A program made the translations under genes and the position numbers. A stretch of 64,000 nucleotides of DNA from Chlorokybus atmophyticus. Its lineage: Eukaryota > Plantae > Mesostigma and Chlorokybus algae. The notes beneath the pieces are model-generated. The model saw only the letters and a list, made by a program, of their open reading frames with translations, ran no database searches and was not told where the DNA came from. The stretch is taken from NCBI GenBank assembly GCA_009103225.1, contig RHPI01003330.1, positions 194,472-258,471 on the forward strand. The letters are read 5' to 3'. Each line of letters begins with the position of its first letter. Positions within the stretch are counted from its first letter, which is position 1. This document shows, piece after piece, positions 22,439 to 31,576 of this stretch.

Positions 22439-23349
22439 CTAGCTCGTGTCAGGGGCTGGGGGCGGGTTCCTCTGCTGTTGCTGCTCCCGTTGTTGTTGCT
22501 GCTGCTGCTGCTGCTGCTTTTGTTGTTGTTGTTGCAGTTTCCTGCGCGCGGCTTCCAGCTCCTCCTCCGACGCCGACCAGAACCTGTCCCTGGCTTCCAG
22601 CACCTTGTGCCTAATCTGATCACACACGGACCCACAGCATGTGAGCCAAAGGTTTTGGAGCACAGAGTGCCTTGTCGCGCGCAGACAATGCGATCATAAT
22701 ACAATAACAATCAATATGAGCGGGGAGCGTAGCAGAGACCACTACACTATCCTTGCGAGCAAGGGATTGGTGTCGGGTTTTGCCTTGTGAAAAGCGTATC
22801 ACGCTTCATACAACATACACACACAATCACACATGTGCAAGCGCACACACGCGCATGCGTGCAACATGCCATTGGTATAGCCACCATGTTGGTTGGGTGA
22901 TATGTTACCTGCTGGTTGTTTGACCGTGAGGCGCACAAGCACACCACAACAAGCATTTTGATAACGGTGTCATCCTGCACATGGCATGCCCTTCAGCACA
23001 GCAACAAGTGCACGAACACGACAACCTTGCTCAGTCGTCTCTCTGTGAATGCAAACCCAATACGCATGCACAACAGCAAGCAAAGAGAGATATAGAGGAC
23101 AATACAGAGGTTCGCCATTGGCGCATTGGACGACGGCGTTGCTTATCACTGCAGGAGGTGCAGCTGTTGTGACATGTGTGCTAATTTCAAAACATTTCTC
23201 ATTCTCACCGGTGTGAACACGTTCTCCCTCCCGTTCCCCTTCCCTCCCCCGTAGTCCGCCACCAGCAGCGCGGCCGCCAGCGCCGCCGTGCCGAACAGCA
23301 GCACCGCCCTGTAACGCAGCTGCCACGGGGTAGGCGGCGGGTCCGCCAT
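22439..23349 (-). CDS. Small single-pass membrane protein of unknown function with poly-Gln tail (exons 23349-23209 and 22615-22439)
   Basis: MADPPPTPWQLRYRAVLLFGTAALAAALLVADYGGGKGNGRENVFTP|IRHKVLEARDRFWSASEEELEAARRKLQQQ...DTS*. Phase-0 GTGAGA...CAG intron; one hydrophobic segment. Confidence 0.65.
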
Positions 23350-23621
23350 CAACACACCTCAACCCAGTCCGCCTACTCCTTGTCGTACTCGTCCTCTCCT
23401 TGCTCCTTTTCTCTTCCACTTGCTTGTCTACCGCTTCCTTGTCCGCCGCCGCCTCCCTGGCCGACGAGTTGCACAGCTCTGTGCATGTGAGCAACAAACA
23501 ACAAGTTCTATATTGCAGAGATAGCCATAACGGCAGAGTGAGAGTGCTGCTGCTCACAGGCAGGCGGCGGTGGCAGTGTCGGCGACGGTGGGTTGAGGTT
23601 GCTGCACGGCGTGGGGTGTGG

Positions 23622-24351
23622 ATGGAGGGGTTTGACCTGCAGGGGCGAGAGGAGGAGGAGGAGGAGGCGGTGCGGGTGGAGGAGCAGCGGGAGAGGGTTA
23701 AGCAGCTCGACAAAGAAGTGAGCGCTGAGGGGTGGCCGACTGCATGCAAGTTGTGCTGTGGTGCTTAATCCAATCGCTTGCTTGCCTGCTTGGTTCAGCT
23801 GCTTCGCTATGGTTTGCTTGTGAATCCATGCTCGTTGGTAAGTGCTGCTTAATTGCATGCAGCTGCAAGCACTCGCTTGTTGCTTCATTTGTGCGACTGC
23901 CTTAGGTTCAAGTGCTGGAAGTCACTGCGGCTGAGCTTGCGAGCCTCAAGCCTGGCAGGGTGAGCAGCAACAGTATGTAAACCAGCTCCAAGCTGCTGCG
24001 TATATGGTTTACAAATCGAAATGTGTATATGACAATCTGGCTGAAGCTTTGCTTCTTCTTTTGTCGTTGCCTGTGCTGTGCTCAGAGAGCGTATGAGAAG
24101 TTCGGCGGGGTGTTCTTCGCTCGGGACGTGAAGGCGTTGCGTGCTAGCGTGAGAGGTAAGCACAAAAAGAACACGCATACTCGCACACGCAGACGCACTT
24201 GAGCGCGCGCGCGCGCGCAGGCACGCAGCCACAACGCACGCACATCATGGGGTTACACAAGTTGGCAACGACGACCCTTCTGACTACAGATGAGATGGCG
24301 ACCAAAAAGTCCGAGCGCGACGGGTTGAAGCTCGGAGCACCCCTGCCATGA
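23622..24351 (+). CDS. 106-aa prefoldin-beta-like protein (ASDURF-like); exons 23622-23717, 23799-23837, 23906-23959, 24086-24155, 24290-24351
   Basis: Four canonical GT-AG introns with compatible phases give MEGFDLQGREEEEEEAVRVEEQRERVKQLDKELLRYGLLVNPCSLVQVLEVTAAELASLKPGRRAYEKFGGVFFARDVKALRASVRDEMATKKSERDGLKLGAPLP*. The helix-[EL..LK..R..Y..FGGVFF]-helix layout matches the beta-prefoldin pattern. The gene is absent from the ORF track because the exons are short. Confidence 0.72.
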
Positions 24352-26781
24352 CATCAACCGATTCACTCTCCCGCATGCCACTTCCAACACTCGGCCGCGC
24401 TCTTTACCATGCCGCCGAGGCGGGAGATGCCTGCAAAGTCGATCAGCTTTGCTGTGAAGCGGTCGCGCGAGACAGGTCTCAGCTGGACTGGTGCGGTGCG
24501 GAAGGGTGCAGCGCGCTCCACATCGCGGCGCGGTTCGGACGCACGGAGGTCGTGTGCTGCCTGCTGCGGGTGGGCATCTTGGGTTGGTGTTTCGGGTTCG
24601 CTGACATGCGACACGCATGGTTCTTTTCTGGCATGATGGGTTGTTTATTCGGTTGTTCAGCTGGTCTGGTCATGTGGGTCTCTCATCCCCTCGTGTCCGC
24701 ATGTGAGTGCGTGTGCATGCATGCATTATGGCGAGTTGATTGAAACAATGTGTCATTGTCGTAAGCAAGCTGTTGGTCTCACGGTGGGTCAGCATCACGT
24801 AAGCTTGTTTACTAAAAGTTGCAAGGCGGGAGCGGTCGTGTGATCGGCTGCATTGCATGGTTAGATGTGTGTGCTTGGTAACATCACATACTCAAGCCTG
24901 GAGCACATGCACCTTGATTGGGCGTTATTTGGGTCAAAGTGTGTCAGCACTCTTGGTGAACACCAGTTCTCTCTGCGCGCATGCGCACATAGTTGTTGAC
25001 GTGTGTCTCTGCTCTGCAGGCCGGTGCGAATGTCCAGCCTCGGGACCGCCGCGCGAAGACCCCGCTGCACGAGGCGTGCGCTCACGGCCACGTCCACTGC
25101 GCTCTTGCGCTGCTCGAGGCCGGTGCCGCCGTCGAACCCCGCAAGACTAACGGCTTCACGCCGCTGCATTCGGCCGCTGCAGGCAAGAGTTCGAGCATAC
25201 AGGTGTGCAGAGTGGCGCCACGTGCTCGTGGCTTTCCACCAAGTTATTTCGCATAGCCATTCAGCGCAAAACATTTCTTGATTTTATGAAACTGACTTTA
25301 TCATCAGCCCTCTTGTATGCAACGAGAATATTGCGCACACAAGAGTTGGCACCATGACATACTGTTTCATACCGTGCATACATGCTTGCACATGCAGGTA
25401 CACACGTAGGTGTATGCGTGCGTGCACATGTTCATGCTTGTGCGTGAGTACCAAGCAACATAGGGGCGTTGCTTTTGCAATATGTGCCTGAGCCAAGTAA
25501 CTCCCCTTCGGTTTCAAGCAGGTGGCTTCCTGGAACCTGTACAGTTGCTCCTGTCATCCGGCGCATCCGTGTCCGCCATGACTCGCGTGGGCGAGCACCC
25601 CCTCCACCTTGCTGCGCGTCGCGAGTCCACGGACGTCATTAATTGCCTTCTCCATGCCAAAACCAACGTCAACGCCCTTACACGGAACGGTCGCACACCT
25701 CTCCACTCGGCCGCGATCGGGGGACACGTAGACGCGGCGCGTGCGCTCGTGCATGCGGGCGCCGTTGTCAACGCCGCCGATAAGAGCGGGGCGACGCCGT
25801 TGCATGATGCGGCGGCGGCGGGGAGTGACGGGGTGGTGAGAATGCTGATTCAGGCAGGTAGTTGGCTTATGACAATCGTGCGATTGTTCGTCGGGTTGTT
25901 GAGTCCCAAGAACTTCATCATTGCAGTATCATCTACTTCATGGTGTTTGATTGCCTTATGTACTTGTGTTCACCCATGCATACACTCTTTTTTATACCTG
26001 TTTGTGTTTTGTGGGTGCCAACAGGCAATCAAAATGTATGTTTGTCAGGGGCTGAGGTTGATGCTAAAGACGGGAGCGGCTGCACTCCGCTGTTTCAAGC
26101 AGCGCTTCACGGGCACACCGAGACTGCGTCGTTTCTGATTCATCACGGTGCAGCTGTGGATGCCACCGACAAGCTTGGGTCGACACCTCTCTACTGGGCT
26201 GCGAGCAGGCAATCTTACCTTATCATCACGCAAATCAAACACATGACACAAACGCGCACATGCCGCACTGGGGAGATATGTCCTTCTCCACACGTTGCGC
26301 ATCAGAATTCAAGTTGACAGGATGTGTAGGAAGTGAGTGTCAAAGGTTATCGCATCGTATTCAAAGCCCGCGTCAATACCATACCTGGCCAACCTGTGTG
26401 CACTTGTGTGAATCAGTCCGAATGTCACTCAAACTTACACAAGTAGCTGGTTGTCTATCAAGAGTTATATTGTTTCAAGGACACACCATGCATTGCGTGC
26501 TGTGCCGAGAGCTGCCAAAACCACACATGCTTCTTTTCCTCAGGGGCGAAGCCGAAGTCATCAACCTCCTGCTCGCGCACGGTGCGGACCCCAACGTGGC
26601 CAACAAGCACCGTTCCCCGCTCCACATCGCCGTCGGGACCGGGGCCAGAGTGGAGGAGACCGTCGGCGCGCTGGTCGCGGGCGGCGCCTGTAAACATGCC
26701 ATTGATAAGGATGGTCGCTCGCCCGCGGAGGTCGCGAGGGCGGTGGGGACAGCGGGGCGGGTGGTTGATTTGTTGGAGTGA
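24348..26781 (+). CDS. Ankyrin-repeat protein (many repeats, 5 exons)
   Basis: Repeated TPLH/SALH.AA..G motifs: SALHIAARFG, TPLHEACAHG, TPLHSAAAGG, HPLHLAARRE, TPLHSAAIGG, TPLHDAAAAG, TPLFQAALHG, TPLYWAASRG, SPLHIAVGTG; stop TGA 26779-26781. Confidence 0.9.
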
Positions 26782-26991
26782 GTGAGGTGGATGGGATGGT
26801 TAGAGAGAGGGTGTTCAAAGACGTAGTGGGGATTGAAGGCATGCGCTTGGCTCGCAGCATGGTGCAGAGTAGGCAACATGCTCGTTGAAGCAACAGGCAC
26901 AGTCACAGGCACTCACTTATACAGCCACCACCGGGCTAGGCACTCACATGGCTAGCTATCTGTGAGCTAAGTACTCCTATAGCCCCACCCC

Positions 26992-27017
26992 ATGCATGCA
27001 TGCATGCATGCATGCAT
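26992..27017. repeat. (CATG/ATGC)n microsatellite; other simple repeats at 12459-12490 (CTAC), 22480-22545 (CAG/CAA), 29023-29044 (CCCA), 29983-30030 (GTGC)
   Basis: Directly visible tandem units. Confidence 0.85.
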
Positions 27018-29228
27018 ACACGCAGTTACCTGCATTCAGGCATGTACAGACTATGAGTAGTGCATCGGTAGTTAGAGCAGATGTGAGCATTAGCATGGTG
27101 TGCAGTGCGCAGCGTGCAACAGCAACCTGCCCCCCTACTCCCAAGCCTCCTTCCAGGTCCCCGCTTCCCCGCTCTCCGCCTCTCTATGCTACCCCTGTTG
27201 TCCGCTAGGGACGTGTTACATATGCTACATACGCAACCCTGGCTGTGCGGCGCTGCAGCTGAGGATTCCGTTACCTAGGGTCCCTCCCTGTGTTTAGTCA
27301 CACGTTGCCACACTTATGTACGTTGTGATCAGCAAGCATCAACAGTGTGTAATATGCATTTGACAATACACTGAGTATGATATGATGCATATTACATAAG
27401 TTATTTCACAATTTTGATGTTGTTGCTATACTACAAATACATCATGCAAAATCGTATTGTATAAACATACAAATATCAGTGGCATCCTCATTGCATCACA
27501 ACATGGGTGTATTCTCATTGTCATAACAACATGTCAAGGCCCTCGATATACATACTAGGGGCAGAGACTAACCCCAATACAAGTAAAGTTAAACCTTGTG
27601 CTAAGCACACTGTCGGTGTCAAATAATGTTGTGCTTACTTAAAGGTATGCTTCTTTTAGTCTATGCACATTGTGCATACTGACTCCGTAATACTGAGCAT
27701 AAACCTCTTAATATACACAGTGTGCATATTGCAAATCCTTGACATCGAGTCCACATTATTGATATACATCATAGCAAAGCCCAAAACTTTTGGTATATTA
27801 ATAAAAGGTCCAATATCACTTAATTGTATATAGTGTATACATCAAGTACAAAAATAGATTTCACATTCTCCCTCTCCATATGCACAAATGGGCCAACCCA
27901 AGTGTGCTTGCATTCATGTGCATGTGCTTGCAAATGATGAAGGAGTTTTGTTGCTGGGAGTTGTGTTCGTGTGAAAAACATGTATGCATAAATGATATGC
28001 ATGGTTTGAGTGTGCATACAGAGAGGTTAGACTGTACAAGGCACGAGTATCGTTGACAATAAACTTTCGATTTGCTTAGAACTGTGGCACGCATAAACAT
28101 GTTGAAGTCTTGTTAGAGCTTGGTCAGCGCAGCACACGCAACAAACTGTAAATGTTCAGCACATGTTGTCTCCAGCTATAGTACATGTAGCTATGTTGCT
28201 AACATAATCACATGTATAATTAGCTCCAAGGCCTTTAGCCTAGCGTATCGTAGATTACTATAAGGTCAATCTTATCGTCATCTTATTTGTGTTTGCGTGA
28301 TAATATGTATCTATGCTGTATGCCTTCATTATGACCAGTGAATTGTAGCGTTGATGGTGCAACTTATGTGTCTGCAACGCATCAGACAGCGCGTGCGAGG
28401 GGGTGGGGGTGGGGGGGTGGGGGGGGCGAGGGGGACAATCTTATCAAACTTTGCAATGTAAAGTTTAACAATCGTGTATTATATATACGTATCTTGTATT
28501 GTAATGCCACAATACAACCCATACTCACTTTTGCAAATTGATAGTCAATTCAACCTGTTTATTCTGATAATCTGATAAAAAGGAATGCACTTATGTGAGC
28601 CCTATTGAGGCCCTTTTTAACACCTAGTGAAAATGACAACCCCAAGCCACTGCATCAATACTTTTGCGTCGTAGATTACGACTGGTAATGTATGTGTCAC
28701 TATGGTACTGCAGATACACCGTATATAGCACCCAAACCCGTACTGCACGCCGTAATCGCTTGTGACACTCGTGTGTGAATTACGCTACTGATGACGAGGC
28801 TGGTCACGTGACGTCTCCTCCTTTCGTCAACCAAAAGAACTGACAGTAGGCGGCCGTACGGTACCGGCACAGCNACGGTTCGTTGCTGCCGTGGAGACAA
28901 GTTGTTCTCAGACAACGCCCTGCCTGCCGCTGTCTCACGATCGGCCTTACAAAAGGAGGAGGTGGTGGTGGTGGTGGTAGTGGTGGCCATTGGAGCTGTT
29001 GGTTTTCAACAGATCGACAACCACCCACCCACCCACCCACCCACAGAGAGTCTCTCAGAGACAGAGACAGAGTGGCTTTGCGTAACAGACCTACTTTGCA
29101 GAACTTCTTGCAAACATACATTGGGCTACTGCCACTCTTCCTCGCTGTGACCACGCCATCCATCAGCCTATCTGCCTCACCACACTCACCATCTACCAAC
29201 CACTGGCCGATTCTGTGCGCACGCCCCN

Positions 29229-29392: not shown

Positions 29393-31576
29393 ATGGGTAG
29401 CGCCAGGTTGCTCTGGGCCTGCTTATTGCTATCCCTCTCGTCCGCGGTGTTGGTGTTGGCAGCGGACCCCGAGTGGCGCGCCATCGACGGCAGCAACAAC
29501 AACGCCGCGAACCCGACATGGGGAGGACCCAACATGGGCGTCCTACAGACAGAGTAGGATGATGTTGTTGTTGTTGATGATGATGACGATGGTGATCTTG
29601 ATGCGGATGATGACGAGTGTTGAGTGTGTTGTGTTGTGTGCGCAGTGGCATCTTCTTTGGTGATGGAGTGAGTTCGATGGGCGGGCAGGGCCGTCCCAGC
29701 GCGCGTGCCATCAGCAACGCAGTGTGCGCCCAGGCAAGTGGTTGACACAGCCACCAACATTGCCAACAACATCACATTGCCTTCCTGCTTGTAGACTATG
29801 CTCAAAATCACACATCAACACGCAGAATGGTTCGGTCCCGAACTGCTACGGGGTGTCCGACTTCCTGTGGGCGTGGGGCCAGATAGTGGATCACGATATC
29901 ACGCTGATCCCTGATAATGTCAAGGACGAGCCCAATTCGCTGATCACCGTGCCGGCCGGTGACCCGCAATTCGACCCTAAGGTGCGTGTGCGTGTGCGTG
30001 TGCGCGTGCGCGTGCGCGTGCGTGTGTGTAGTTGATTGCGTGCGTGAGTGCATTCGCATGTTTCACGCGCGCACATACGCACCCACACCCACGCTTGCAC
30101 GAGCGCGTATACTTATGTATGTGCGCGCACATTTGTGGACTTGCGCCGGCGTGTGTGTCACCTGTGCCTGTGCGCGTGTGAGTGTCTGCGTGCGTGGAAA
30201 CGTCGTCGTTGGAGCTTTCCATGCAATTAAGTGTCTCAACCCGATGCGCAGGGCAACGGGAATGTGGTGATCCCGGTGACCAGGACCGCTTACATGAAGG
30301 GCAGCAAGCCGAGGTGCCCTATGAACGTCAACAGCGCGTGGCTCGACGGCTCCATGCTGTACGGCTCCACAGCCGATCGCGCCAAATGGCTCCGCAGCGG
30401 AGTGGTAAGCACGCATGTCATGGGTTATGCCATCACATGCCGCAAGTTGTGTCAATGCAGCACATGAACACGCACGCACGCACGCACACACACACAGGGC
30501 GGTGGGATGAAGACGACAGCTGGCAACATGCTTCCCCTGAACGACGGTACCGTTGCGAACAAGGGCGGTCCCAACATCACCGACCTCTCACCCCGTCTCT
30601 ACGTCGGCGGGGACATCCGCGTCAATGAGCACGCCGTCCTGCACGCGATGCACACGCTCCTAGTCAGAGAACACAACTACCAGGTACATACCCACTACTC
30701 ATCAACACCATCATCAACATACTAATAAACTATTAGGCGTCGGAGGTGGCGAAGGCGAACCCGAAGTATACGGATGAGCAAATCTATCAGTACGCGAGGC
30801 GGATGGTGACGGCGGAGATACAAGCAATCACTTACAACGAGTTCTTGCCCAAACTGCTGGGAAGCATGGCGCCGGGGCCGTATGCCGGTACGCGTGCATG
30901 TGTGTGCATGTGCGTTTGTACGAGTGTATGTACGCGTGCGCGTGCAACTGTGCTTCCACTTACCAACGCATTGCGCGAGTTTGTAAAAGCTCATACCGGT
31001 AGCTGCTTCACCTACTGTCACATAACACTAGTATTATCACACTGATACGATTTGCACCATGTGTGACGATTGAGTTCGTGTGTGGGCAGGCTACGATCCG
31101 ACCGCCAACCCGCAGATGCTCAACACCTTCTCGTCGGCGATCTTCCGCCTCCACACATTCATCAGCGACACGATCCTGTTGCTCGACGACGCCGGCAACC
31201 ACACCTTCGGTAAGAAGAGAGACATACTCTATTCTATGTGTGTGATGTAACAACTTGTGACAACACGTGTTGTTATGTATGTACAGGGAGTCCGTTTCCA
31301 GTGCGCTCGATCTTCTTCGACCCAACCTTCGTCCCACGCGTCGGCATCGACCCCATCCTGCGCGGCCTCGCCGCACAAGCGTGCCAGGCCTCGGATGCCA
31401 AGGTGGACAACAAGAAGTTGTTGTTGTTGTTGTGGGGTGCTGATGCATTGCTATGCTATGCTTATGCAGCTTGTTGAGAGTCTGCGGAGCTTTCTGTTTG
31501 GTCAGCCAGGCAGCGGCGGGTTGGACCTCGCTGCCATCAACATCCAGCGCGGCAGAGAGCAGGTAAAATAGACGTG

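Follow-up and report, generated by a model that had tools for sequence, protein, structure and literature searches.

A short stretch of the Chlorokybus atmophyticus genome was analyzed, in which a small open reading frame (ORF1) for a prefoldin-like protein runs directly into a second one (ORF2) for an ankyrin-repeat protein on the plus strand. It lies in a sequenced 64-kb window (64,000 nt of contig RHPI01003330.1, numbered here from its first letter), which is eukaryotic and intron-rich with a G+C content of about 51%. The locus is probably a nuclear bicistronic gene, whose single mRNA would carry ORF1, encoding a protein of the ASDURF type, and the ankyrin ORF2, the latter being reached mostly by leaky scanning. 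The bicistronic arrangement, which an earlier note on this DNA had proposed from the sequence, was well supported at the level of assembled RNA, as a spliced contig of 1081 nt spans both ORFs. We envisage one capped and spliced mRNA of about 2.1 kb and eight exons, which would extend from 23511 or slightly upstream to about 27334-27360 and would contain ORF1 (four exons, 93 amino acids) and ORF2 (five exons, 372 amino acids) as separate frames.

ORF1 ends in CCA-TGA with the stop codon at 24349-24351, and the start codon of ORF2 at 24348-24350 overlaps this stop as ATGA (24348-24351); the coordinates reported for this overlap in the earlier note proved exact. A TGA at 24291-24293, also reported there, was found in the ankyrin frame and shuts that frame upstream. 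As the two frames are distinct and this TGA lies upstream of ORF2, two proteins rather than a fusion would be produced. The start contexts were likewise as described before: the start codon of ORF1 (AUG1, gtgtggATGg) is weak with U (T in the DNA) at -3, and that of ORF2 (AUG2, cctgccATGa, containing GCCATG) has G at -3. About 1 in 4 TGA stops is preceded by A, and the ATGA overlap taken alone could be due to chance. It carries weight because the RNA places both ORFs in one exon.

The RNA evidence consisted of the assembled contigs of three RNA-type runs (X1, X2 and X3), supplemented with one DNA-type run (X7), and the contigs were aligned to positions 23000-27600 of the window (4601 letters). 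The spanning contig (X1 record 2, word depth 47) was unbroken from the 5' leader via ORF1 and the ATGA into ankyrin exon 3, with aligned segments at 23511-23717, 23906-23958, 24085-24153, 24288-24568, 25019-25178 and 25518-25828, of which the piece 23906-23958 was implied by record positions 208-260. The boundaries of the joints were set after allowing for letters matching both sides. The contig begins with a 5' leader of at least 111 nt (23511-23621), in which the scan detected no AUG, followed by ORF1 exon 1 with AUG1 (23622-23717), exon 2 (23906-23959), exon 3 (24086-24155) and exon 4 (24290-24351), which forms the initial 62 nt of the exon shared with ORF2 (24290-24569). In X3 record 10, 24100-24153 was joined to 24288-24395, crossing the ATGA as the X1 contig does, and X2 record 4 joined 23906-23958, 24085-24153 and 24288-24317, corresponding to exons 2, 3 and 4 of ORF1. 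The last ORF1 intron had been spliced out in all three runs (joint 24155>24290), with the shared exon attached to ORF1. The remaining part of the transcript was represented by X1 record 3, which covers the last two ankyrin exons (4 and 5) and continues for 553 nt into the 3' untranslated region (UTR), ending at 27334. The TGTAA at 27348-27352 may serve as poly(A) signal, in which case the 3' UTR would occupy 26782-27352.

These contigs bear on the possibility that the ankyrin protein is made from a separate and scarcer monocistronic mRNA starting in the last intron or exon of ORF1, or that the spanning contig merges two overlapping transcripts. Minor isoforms of this kind are conceivable as the contigs carry no 5'-end information, and many of the known loci are only partly polycistronic (Gallaher et al. 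2021, PMC7896298). However, every contig reaching 24288-24290 was spliced to 24155, in all three runs. The contigs of X1-X3 covered no intron, 24156-24287 included, and the shared exon contributes only 58 nt upstream of AUG2. The motif scan found neither TGTAA nor AATAAA between the ORFs and through 24352-25019, ankyrin intron 1 included, which agrees with the earlier claim that there is no room for a poly(A) site. No monocistronic contig was seen among the contigs of X1-X3, although the assembler drops rare forms. We therefore regard a separate origin of the ankyrin mRNA as improbable.

The RNA joints also told against a prefoldin-ankyrin fusion. Splicing to a weak GAG acceptor at 24294, five bases downstream of the one used, would start the exon at 24295 and place ORF1 residues 1-73 in frame with the ankyrin repeats. 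The splice arithmetic was confirmed and provides one open frame into the repeats, but the acceptor, which had been put forward earlier as a possible source of a fusion, was used in none of the three runs, all of which splice at the CAG acceptor to the exon starting at 24290. In addition, a fused product would lack the second helix in the modelled prefoldin coiled coil, and the homologues end as free small proteins. Such a product is highly improbable, though it might still exist as a rare isoform.

The RNA led to a correction of the ORF1 gene model, which had been taken as five exons and 106 amino acids. The X1 RNA joins 23717 straight to 23906, and in record 2 the pieces that end at 23717 and begin at 24085 are separated by exactly 53 letters, equal to exon 23906-23958. 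The putative 39-nt exon at 23799-23837, located inside intron 1 (23718-23905), was absent from the RNA contigs, and ORF1 therefore consists of four exons encoding 93 amino acids. The same 13 extra residues occur in the public annotation P0001 (eukprot jgi/Chlat1/5556/Chrsp369S00412; 106 amino acids), the only near-identical database protein. The 13-residue insert was found in none of eight homologues in the alignment, and it would break the helix at residues 6-44 of the predicted structure. The score against the Pfam Prefoldin_2 model was 31.4 bits without the insert and 23.5 bits with it, compared with a cut-off of 27.6. The five-exon form was thus ruled out by the RNA joints, the homologue alignment and the Pfam score, and the public gene model contains a spurious 13-residue insert; gene finders tend to miss or fuse such pairs. 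With four exons, the number of internal AUGs, previously counted as five, decreases to three (24093, 24290 and 24295).

The match of the 93-residue protein to Prefoldin_2 (PF01920) covers residues 18-82 with an E-value of 1.9e-7. A HMMER search over 1.8 billion representatives detected eight relatives of 70-95 amino acids with E-values of 1e-6 to 1e-3, including proteins of Riccia sorocarpa, R. fluitans and Monoraphidium minutum, and further searches added relatives in Dunaliella salina and Marchantia polymorpha (Mp7g08640). The AlphaFold model, built from the alignment of the relatives, had a predicted local distance difference test (pLDDT) score of 84 and showed a helix, a beta-hairpin and a helix (helix 6-44, strands 51-56 and 59-64, helix 65-88). 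When compared with the Swiss-Prot models by Foldseek, it matched beta-prefoldins only, with PFDN2, PFDN6, PFDN1 and human ASDURF (L0R819) among the top matches and template modelling (TM) scores up to 0.85; L0R819 was aligned over 68 residues with a root-mean-square deviation of 1.3. The single ORF1 sequence did not match any solved structure, and the word-index homology searches reached the annotated protein, a few algal relatives and Marchantia but neither Arabidopsis nor animal ASDURF. From the profile match and the predicted fold, the assignment of the ORF1 product as a beta-class prefoldin is sound.

The position of this protein within the beta class was examined with the family profile. 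Against the PDB, the profile matched archaeal prefoldin beta (3aei, E 4.8e-4), matched human PFDN2 weakly (E 0.89) and gave no match to PFDN1, PFDN4 and PFDN6 of entry 6nr8, indicating that the protein is not simply a canonical beta subunit. Profile and size set the family apart from PFDN1, 2, 4 and 6, though it may yet correspond to PDRG1. The Pfam ASDURF model (PF21975) matched six of nine family members, all below the gathering score (best 26.3 compared with 27), and one member scored higher with PF21975 than with PF01920. The Atlas feature search returned ASDURF-carrying clusters at 0.88 for a part of the window protein. The Marchantia homologue retrieved ASDURF-carrying clusters at 0.92 and 0.85, with the chordate ASDURF cluster fourth (0.85), and two Streptophyta clusters closer to this homologue partly carry PF21975. 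Taken together, these profile and feature comparisons make it quite probable that the ORF1 family represents ASDURF orthologues. The ORF1 product is presumably the sixth subunit of the prefoldin-like module working with R2TP, known as the PAQosome in animals.

The relatives of ORF1 were located with respect to their downstream genes. Three sets of transcript contigs carry, downstream of the small ORF and in the same orientation, a REXO4-like ORF whose product has an RNase_T domain and a lysine-rich N-terminus, at a distance of 60 nt in L001-L003 (three runs), 105 nt in L004 (an MMETSP transcriptome) and 74 nt in L011. In the genome of Monoraphidium, the small prefoldin gene has this REXO4-like exonuclease as its immediate downstream neighbour in the same orientation. 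In Dunaliella, 89 bp separate the small gene from the start of one with a comparable lysine-rich beginning, probably representing the same pairing. The loci concerned were L001:366-1901, L004:157-1470, L011:41-1044, L009:6001-9024 and L013:6001-7432. No REXO4-like sequence was present in the 64-kb window, and no same-strand partner was found near the small gene in Riccia, Marchantia and two compact genomes. It appears from these sequences and the literature that one small-prefoldin family lies upstream of ASNSD1 in animals, of a REXO4-like gene in chlorophyte-like algae and of the ankyrin gene in Chlorokybus, and stands alone in land plants. The earlier suggestion that the same chaperone family may sit on a bicistronic mRNA with a different partner thus held and could be extended, as relatives precede a REXO4-like ORF in other algae.

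Two peculiarities of the liverwort loci are recorded here. The R. sorocarpa protein P0010 (L012:14212-16861, 381 amino acids), encoded 5 kb from the gene for the 70-residue prefoldin, includes an almost identical prefoldin segment (residues 181-241). This represents a second copy, which the annotation may have fused to adjacent sequence. In the Marchantia transcript contig L016:137-677, a called ORF of 107 amino acids (354-677) without a Pfam match overlaps the end of the 75-residue prefoldin ORF by 11 nt and is probably spurious.

The start contexts of these loci were compared with those in Chlorokybus. In the small sample of six loci having a same-strand partner, five (Chlorokybus and four of the five others) carry U at -3 of AUG1, and the clearly monocistronic loci have A, A and C at this position. 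A purine was present at -3 of AUG2 in the REXO4-type transcript contigs L001, L004 and L011. These three transcripts contained only one, one and no AUG before ORF2 when about 3.5 were expected for each, or two in total compared with about 10.6 expected. The Chlorokybus locus resembles the REXO4-type bicistrons at -3 of both start codons (U for AUG1, a purine for AUG2) but lacks the depletion of AUGs: three AUGs were present in the 275 nt between AUG1 and AUG2, compared with 4.0 expected from shuffled sequences (P = 0.41). The first, AUG 24093 in exon 3, is out of frame in a weak context and opens a 12-codon ORF. The other two fall within the last 58 nt. AUG 24290, with G at -3, opens another 12-codon ORF, which ends at 24326-24328, 20 nt before AUG2, and AUG 24295, with G at both -3 and +4, is in the ORF1 frame and leads over 18 codons to the shared UGA. 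As these ORFs of 12 and 18 codons are short, ordinary reinitiation is possible after them.

Leaky scanning has been shown experimentally for the bicistrons of chlorophytes, in which ORF1 starts in a weak context, AUGs preceding ORF2 are scarce and ORF2 responds inversely to the context of ORF1 (PMC7896298, PMC11291117). Stop and start codons overlap at some of the chlorophyte loci as well (PMC7896298, PMC11291117). The REXO4-type transcripts conform to the leaky-scanning pattern in their start contexts and scarcity of AUGs. By analogy with the chlorophyte bicistrons, ORF2 of Chlorokybus is most likely reached by leaky scanning past AUG1, supplemented by reinitiation after short ORFs. In this mechanism, part of the scanning 43S complexes would pass the weak AUG1, and complexes starting at AUG 24290 or 24295 would terminate 20 nt before AUG2 or on AUG2, respectively, and then resume.

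Termination-reinitiation as the main route would instead require that the full 93-codon ORF1 is read to the UGA of the AUGA and that the 40S subunit, still bound to the mRNA, restarts at the overlapping AUG, in the manner of certain AUGA or UAAUG junctions of viruses, those of fungi included. The exact overlap of stop and start and the undepleted AUGs between the two starts, which are contrary to pure leaky scanning, argue for this route, as does a modest hairpin, whose first base lies about 19 nt beyond AUG2 (z = -2.3 relative to mononucleotide-shuffled sequences). Nevertheless, reinitiation after long ORFs is inefficient in eukaryotes when upstream signals are lacking (PMC11291117), and the 120 nt upstream of the ATGA contained no unusual RNA structure (fold z -1.8 to +0.3) and no UGGGA (motif 1 of the termination upstream ribosomal binding site, TURBS), the 18S rRNA of Chlorokybus being outside this comparison. 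The homologous bicistrons share the weak U at -3 yet have their ORFs 60-105 nt apart, so that no overlap is usable there. If ORF2 were started at the next in-frame AUG, at 24375, the overlap would have no mechanistic role at all. We thus consider this route unlikely. The preference for reinitiation over leaky scanning in the earlier note had rested on five AUGs; with three AUGs opening ORFs of 12, 12 and 18 codons, and with the U at -3 of AUG1 shared among the homologues, leaky scanning is at least as likely, perhaps along with short-ORF reinitiation. Prokaryote-like translational coupling at the ATGA is a possibility.

The ankyrin repeats of ORF2 extend from about residue 15 to the end, and Pfam ankyrin models matched every exon, with E-values down to 1e-29. 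Exon 1 (24348-24569) is joined to exon 2 (25020-25182) in the RNA (joint 24569>25020), followed by exon 3 (25522-25857), exon 4 (26049-26208) and exon 5 (26544-26781), which ends in the stop TGA at 26779-26781. Exons 2 and 3 agreed with both RNA contigs and Pfam matches, and exon 5 with RNA contigs and the reading frame. The junction 25857/26049 was bridged by no listed contig and was placed from the frame and the ankyrin consensus. X2 record 5 begins at 26045 with seven unaligned letters, which could reflect either the alternative use of an out-of-frame GC donor at 25854 or an artefact at the end of the contig. All introns of the locus are GT-AG except for two GC-AG introns, both among the four of the ankyrin gene; the RNA joint across 25183-25521 was detected in one run and that across 26209-26543 in three (X1, X2 and X3). 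X1 derives from a divergent strain, which differed from the window by seven synonymous and five nonsynonymous substitutions in ORF2 and by about 2.3% in the 3' UTR, with no listed difference in ORF1; this pattern is weakly consistent with constraint.

Several unusual contigs matched the locus. An abundant foreign RNA contig in X1 and X2 matches 23647-23669, in the GAG repeat of ORF1, and approximately 24609-24628, about 20 nt each. The loose ends at 23647 and 24628 in these two runs had been considered as an isoform, and this was rejected because the depth arithmetic fits the one abundant foreign contig. Low-depth contigs of X7 link 24353-24420 (68 nt, ankyrin exon 1) to 30999-31025 and to 18511 onward, that is, to sequences 6.6 kb downstream and 5.8 kb upstream, and the library is possibly a proximity-ligation or otherwise chimeric one. 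Duplicated ankyrin copies were rejected as the cause, as self-BLAST of the window detected no repeat.

On the upstream side, a minus-strand neighbour at 22586-23418 is arranged head to head with the locus. It starts with an ATG at 23349, contains an intron at 22616-23208 and encodes a glutamine-rich product; a spliced minus-strand contig (X1 record 1) covers 23209-23418 of its first exon, which may extend further. As this exon and the start of the bicistronic contig are at most about 90 bp apart (23419-23510), the two genes likely share a short bidirectional promoter, and the transcription start site would lie in or near this presumed promoter region. Several X1 RNA contigs share about 39 nt at 23501-23540 and diverge on both sides into sequence outside the window. 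The 5' end of the bicistronic mRNA is not fixed because its contig begins inside this shared segment.

Several points weigh against a bicistronic ASDURF-type gene read mostly by leaky scanning. The RNA sequences are assembled contigs rather than single molecules, and a contig over two genes is no proof of a single transcript. Moreover, such contigs leave the 5' end unmapped and drop rare isoforms. That both ORFs are translated, and how ORF2 is reached, is what we infer from the sequence and the contigs. With three intervening AUGs, one of them in a strong context, and no depletion, pure leaky scanning would be inefficient here. Finally, PF21975 gave no match to the 93-residue window protein at E<=1. 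The earlier designation of ORF1 as prefoldin-beta/ASDURF-like was upheld by Pfam and fold for the beta-prefoldin part; the ASDURF part was sub-threshold in the homologues and unmatched in the window protein, so that orthology with ASDURF is likely, short of proof.

The Chlorokybus locus unites algal nuclear bicistrons with ASDURF, the textbook example of a functional human protein from an upstream ORF, near the base of the streptophytes. What is new here is that, in chlorophyte-like taxa, relatives of the small prefoldin share a transcript with a REXO4-like ORF that begins 60-105 nt beyond them. We found no paper stating this pattern of partners or linking ASDURF with algal bicistrons, although the REXO4-like pair may figure unlabelled in Dataset S1 of Gallaher et al. 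2021, and no description of nuclear bicistrons in streptophyte algae was found in the papers searched. The variation in partner makes it testable whether ASDURF lies upstream through a historical accident in a single animal gene or because this position has recurrently served to express a low-dose chaperone subunit. We propose only tentatively, and with some doubt, that the upstream-cistron position is a conserved or repeatedly selected property of ASDURF across eukaryotes, with the partner exchanged at least twice and the gene released to stand alone in land plants. If this is true, the upstream position would set the dose of the sixth prefoldin-like subunit or couple it to the translation status, and the AUGA of Chlorokybus would be a true stop-start coupling on a cellular mRNA. 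This natural AUGA is also informative in itself, since leaky scanning and reinitiation give opposite and measurable predictions.

Human ASDURF, a beta-prefoldin-like protein of 96 amino acids, is the upstream cistron of the ASNSD1 mRNA (Cloutier et al. 2020, cited in PMC10893143 and PMC9776223). The Chlorokybus locus resembles it in having a small beta-prefoldin-like upstream cistron of the same fold and an unrelated main ORF. It differs in that the partner is an ankyrin protein, the ORFs overlap at the ATGA and the sequence link is sub-threshold, and membership in the corresponding complex is presumed. In Arabidopsis, ASDURF (AT1G49245) co-purifies with UXT, URI, PDRG1, PFD2 and PFD6 (bioRxiv 10.1101/2023.12.13.571423; PMC10893143). 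This is likewise a small beta-prefoldin of a streptophyte, the likeness being one of description rather than of aligned sequence; the liverwort homologue P0014, found via the best match of the window protein (P0002), has streptophyte small prefoldins partly carrying PF21975 as its nearest Atlas clusters. In contrast to Chlorokybus, the Arabidopsis gene stands alone, and the liverwort loci also look monocistronic.

The chlorophyte polycistronic loci (Gallaher et al. 2021, PMC7896298; PMC11291117) share with Chlorokybus a small upstream and a larger downstream ORF on one mature mRNA, a weak AUG1 and a stronger AUG2, and some of those in Auxenochlorella have overlapping stop and start codons like the Chlorokybus ATGA. 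The accessible text and supplements of these two papers, Dataset S1 apart, contained no prefoldin, ASNSD1, ankyrin or RNase T entry. Green-algal polycistrons, which had been invoked earlier in support of the locus, are thus documented, but the published work covers chlorophytes only, whereas Chlorokybus is a streptophyte alga whose locus has a leader of at least 111 nt and an upstream region without AUG depletion.

The AUGA junction itself has counterparts among viruses. Overlapping stop and start codons also occur at the viral termination-reinitiation junctions, such as those with the calicivirus TURBS, influenza B M1/BM2 and the victorivirus AUGA. The Chlorokybus junction differs from them in lacking UGGGA and upstream structure, and it lies on a cellular spliced mRNA. 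In the bicistronic CDC26-TTM3 transcripts of plants, a small protein belonging to a large complex is encoded ahead of a larger, unrelated one. A REX1-S/REX1-B bicistronic transcript is known in Chlamydomonas (PMC7896298). In this layout both systems, which belong to the green lineage, resemble the Chlorokybus locus, although the proteins are different and their partner is constant across lineages, whereas that of the ASDURF-like cistron changes.

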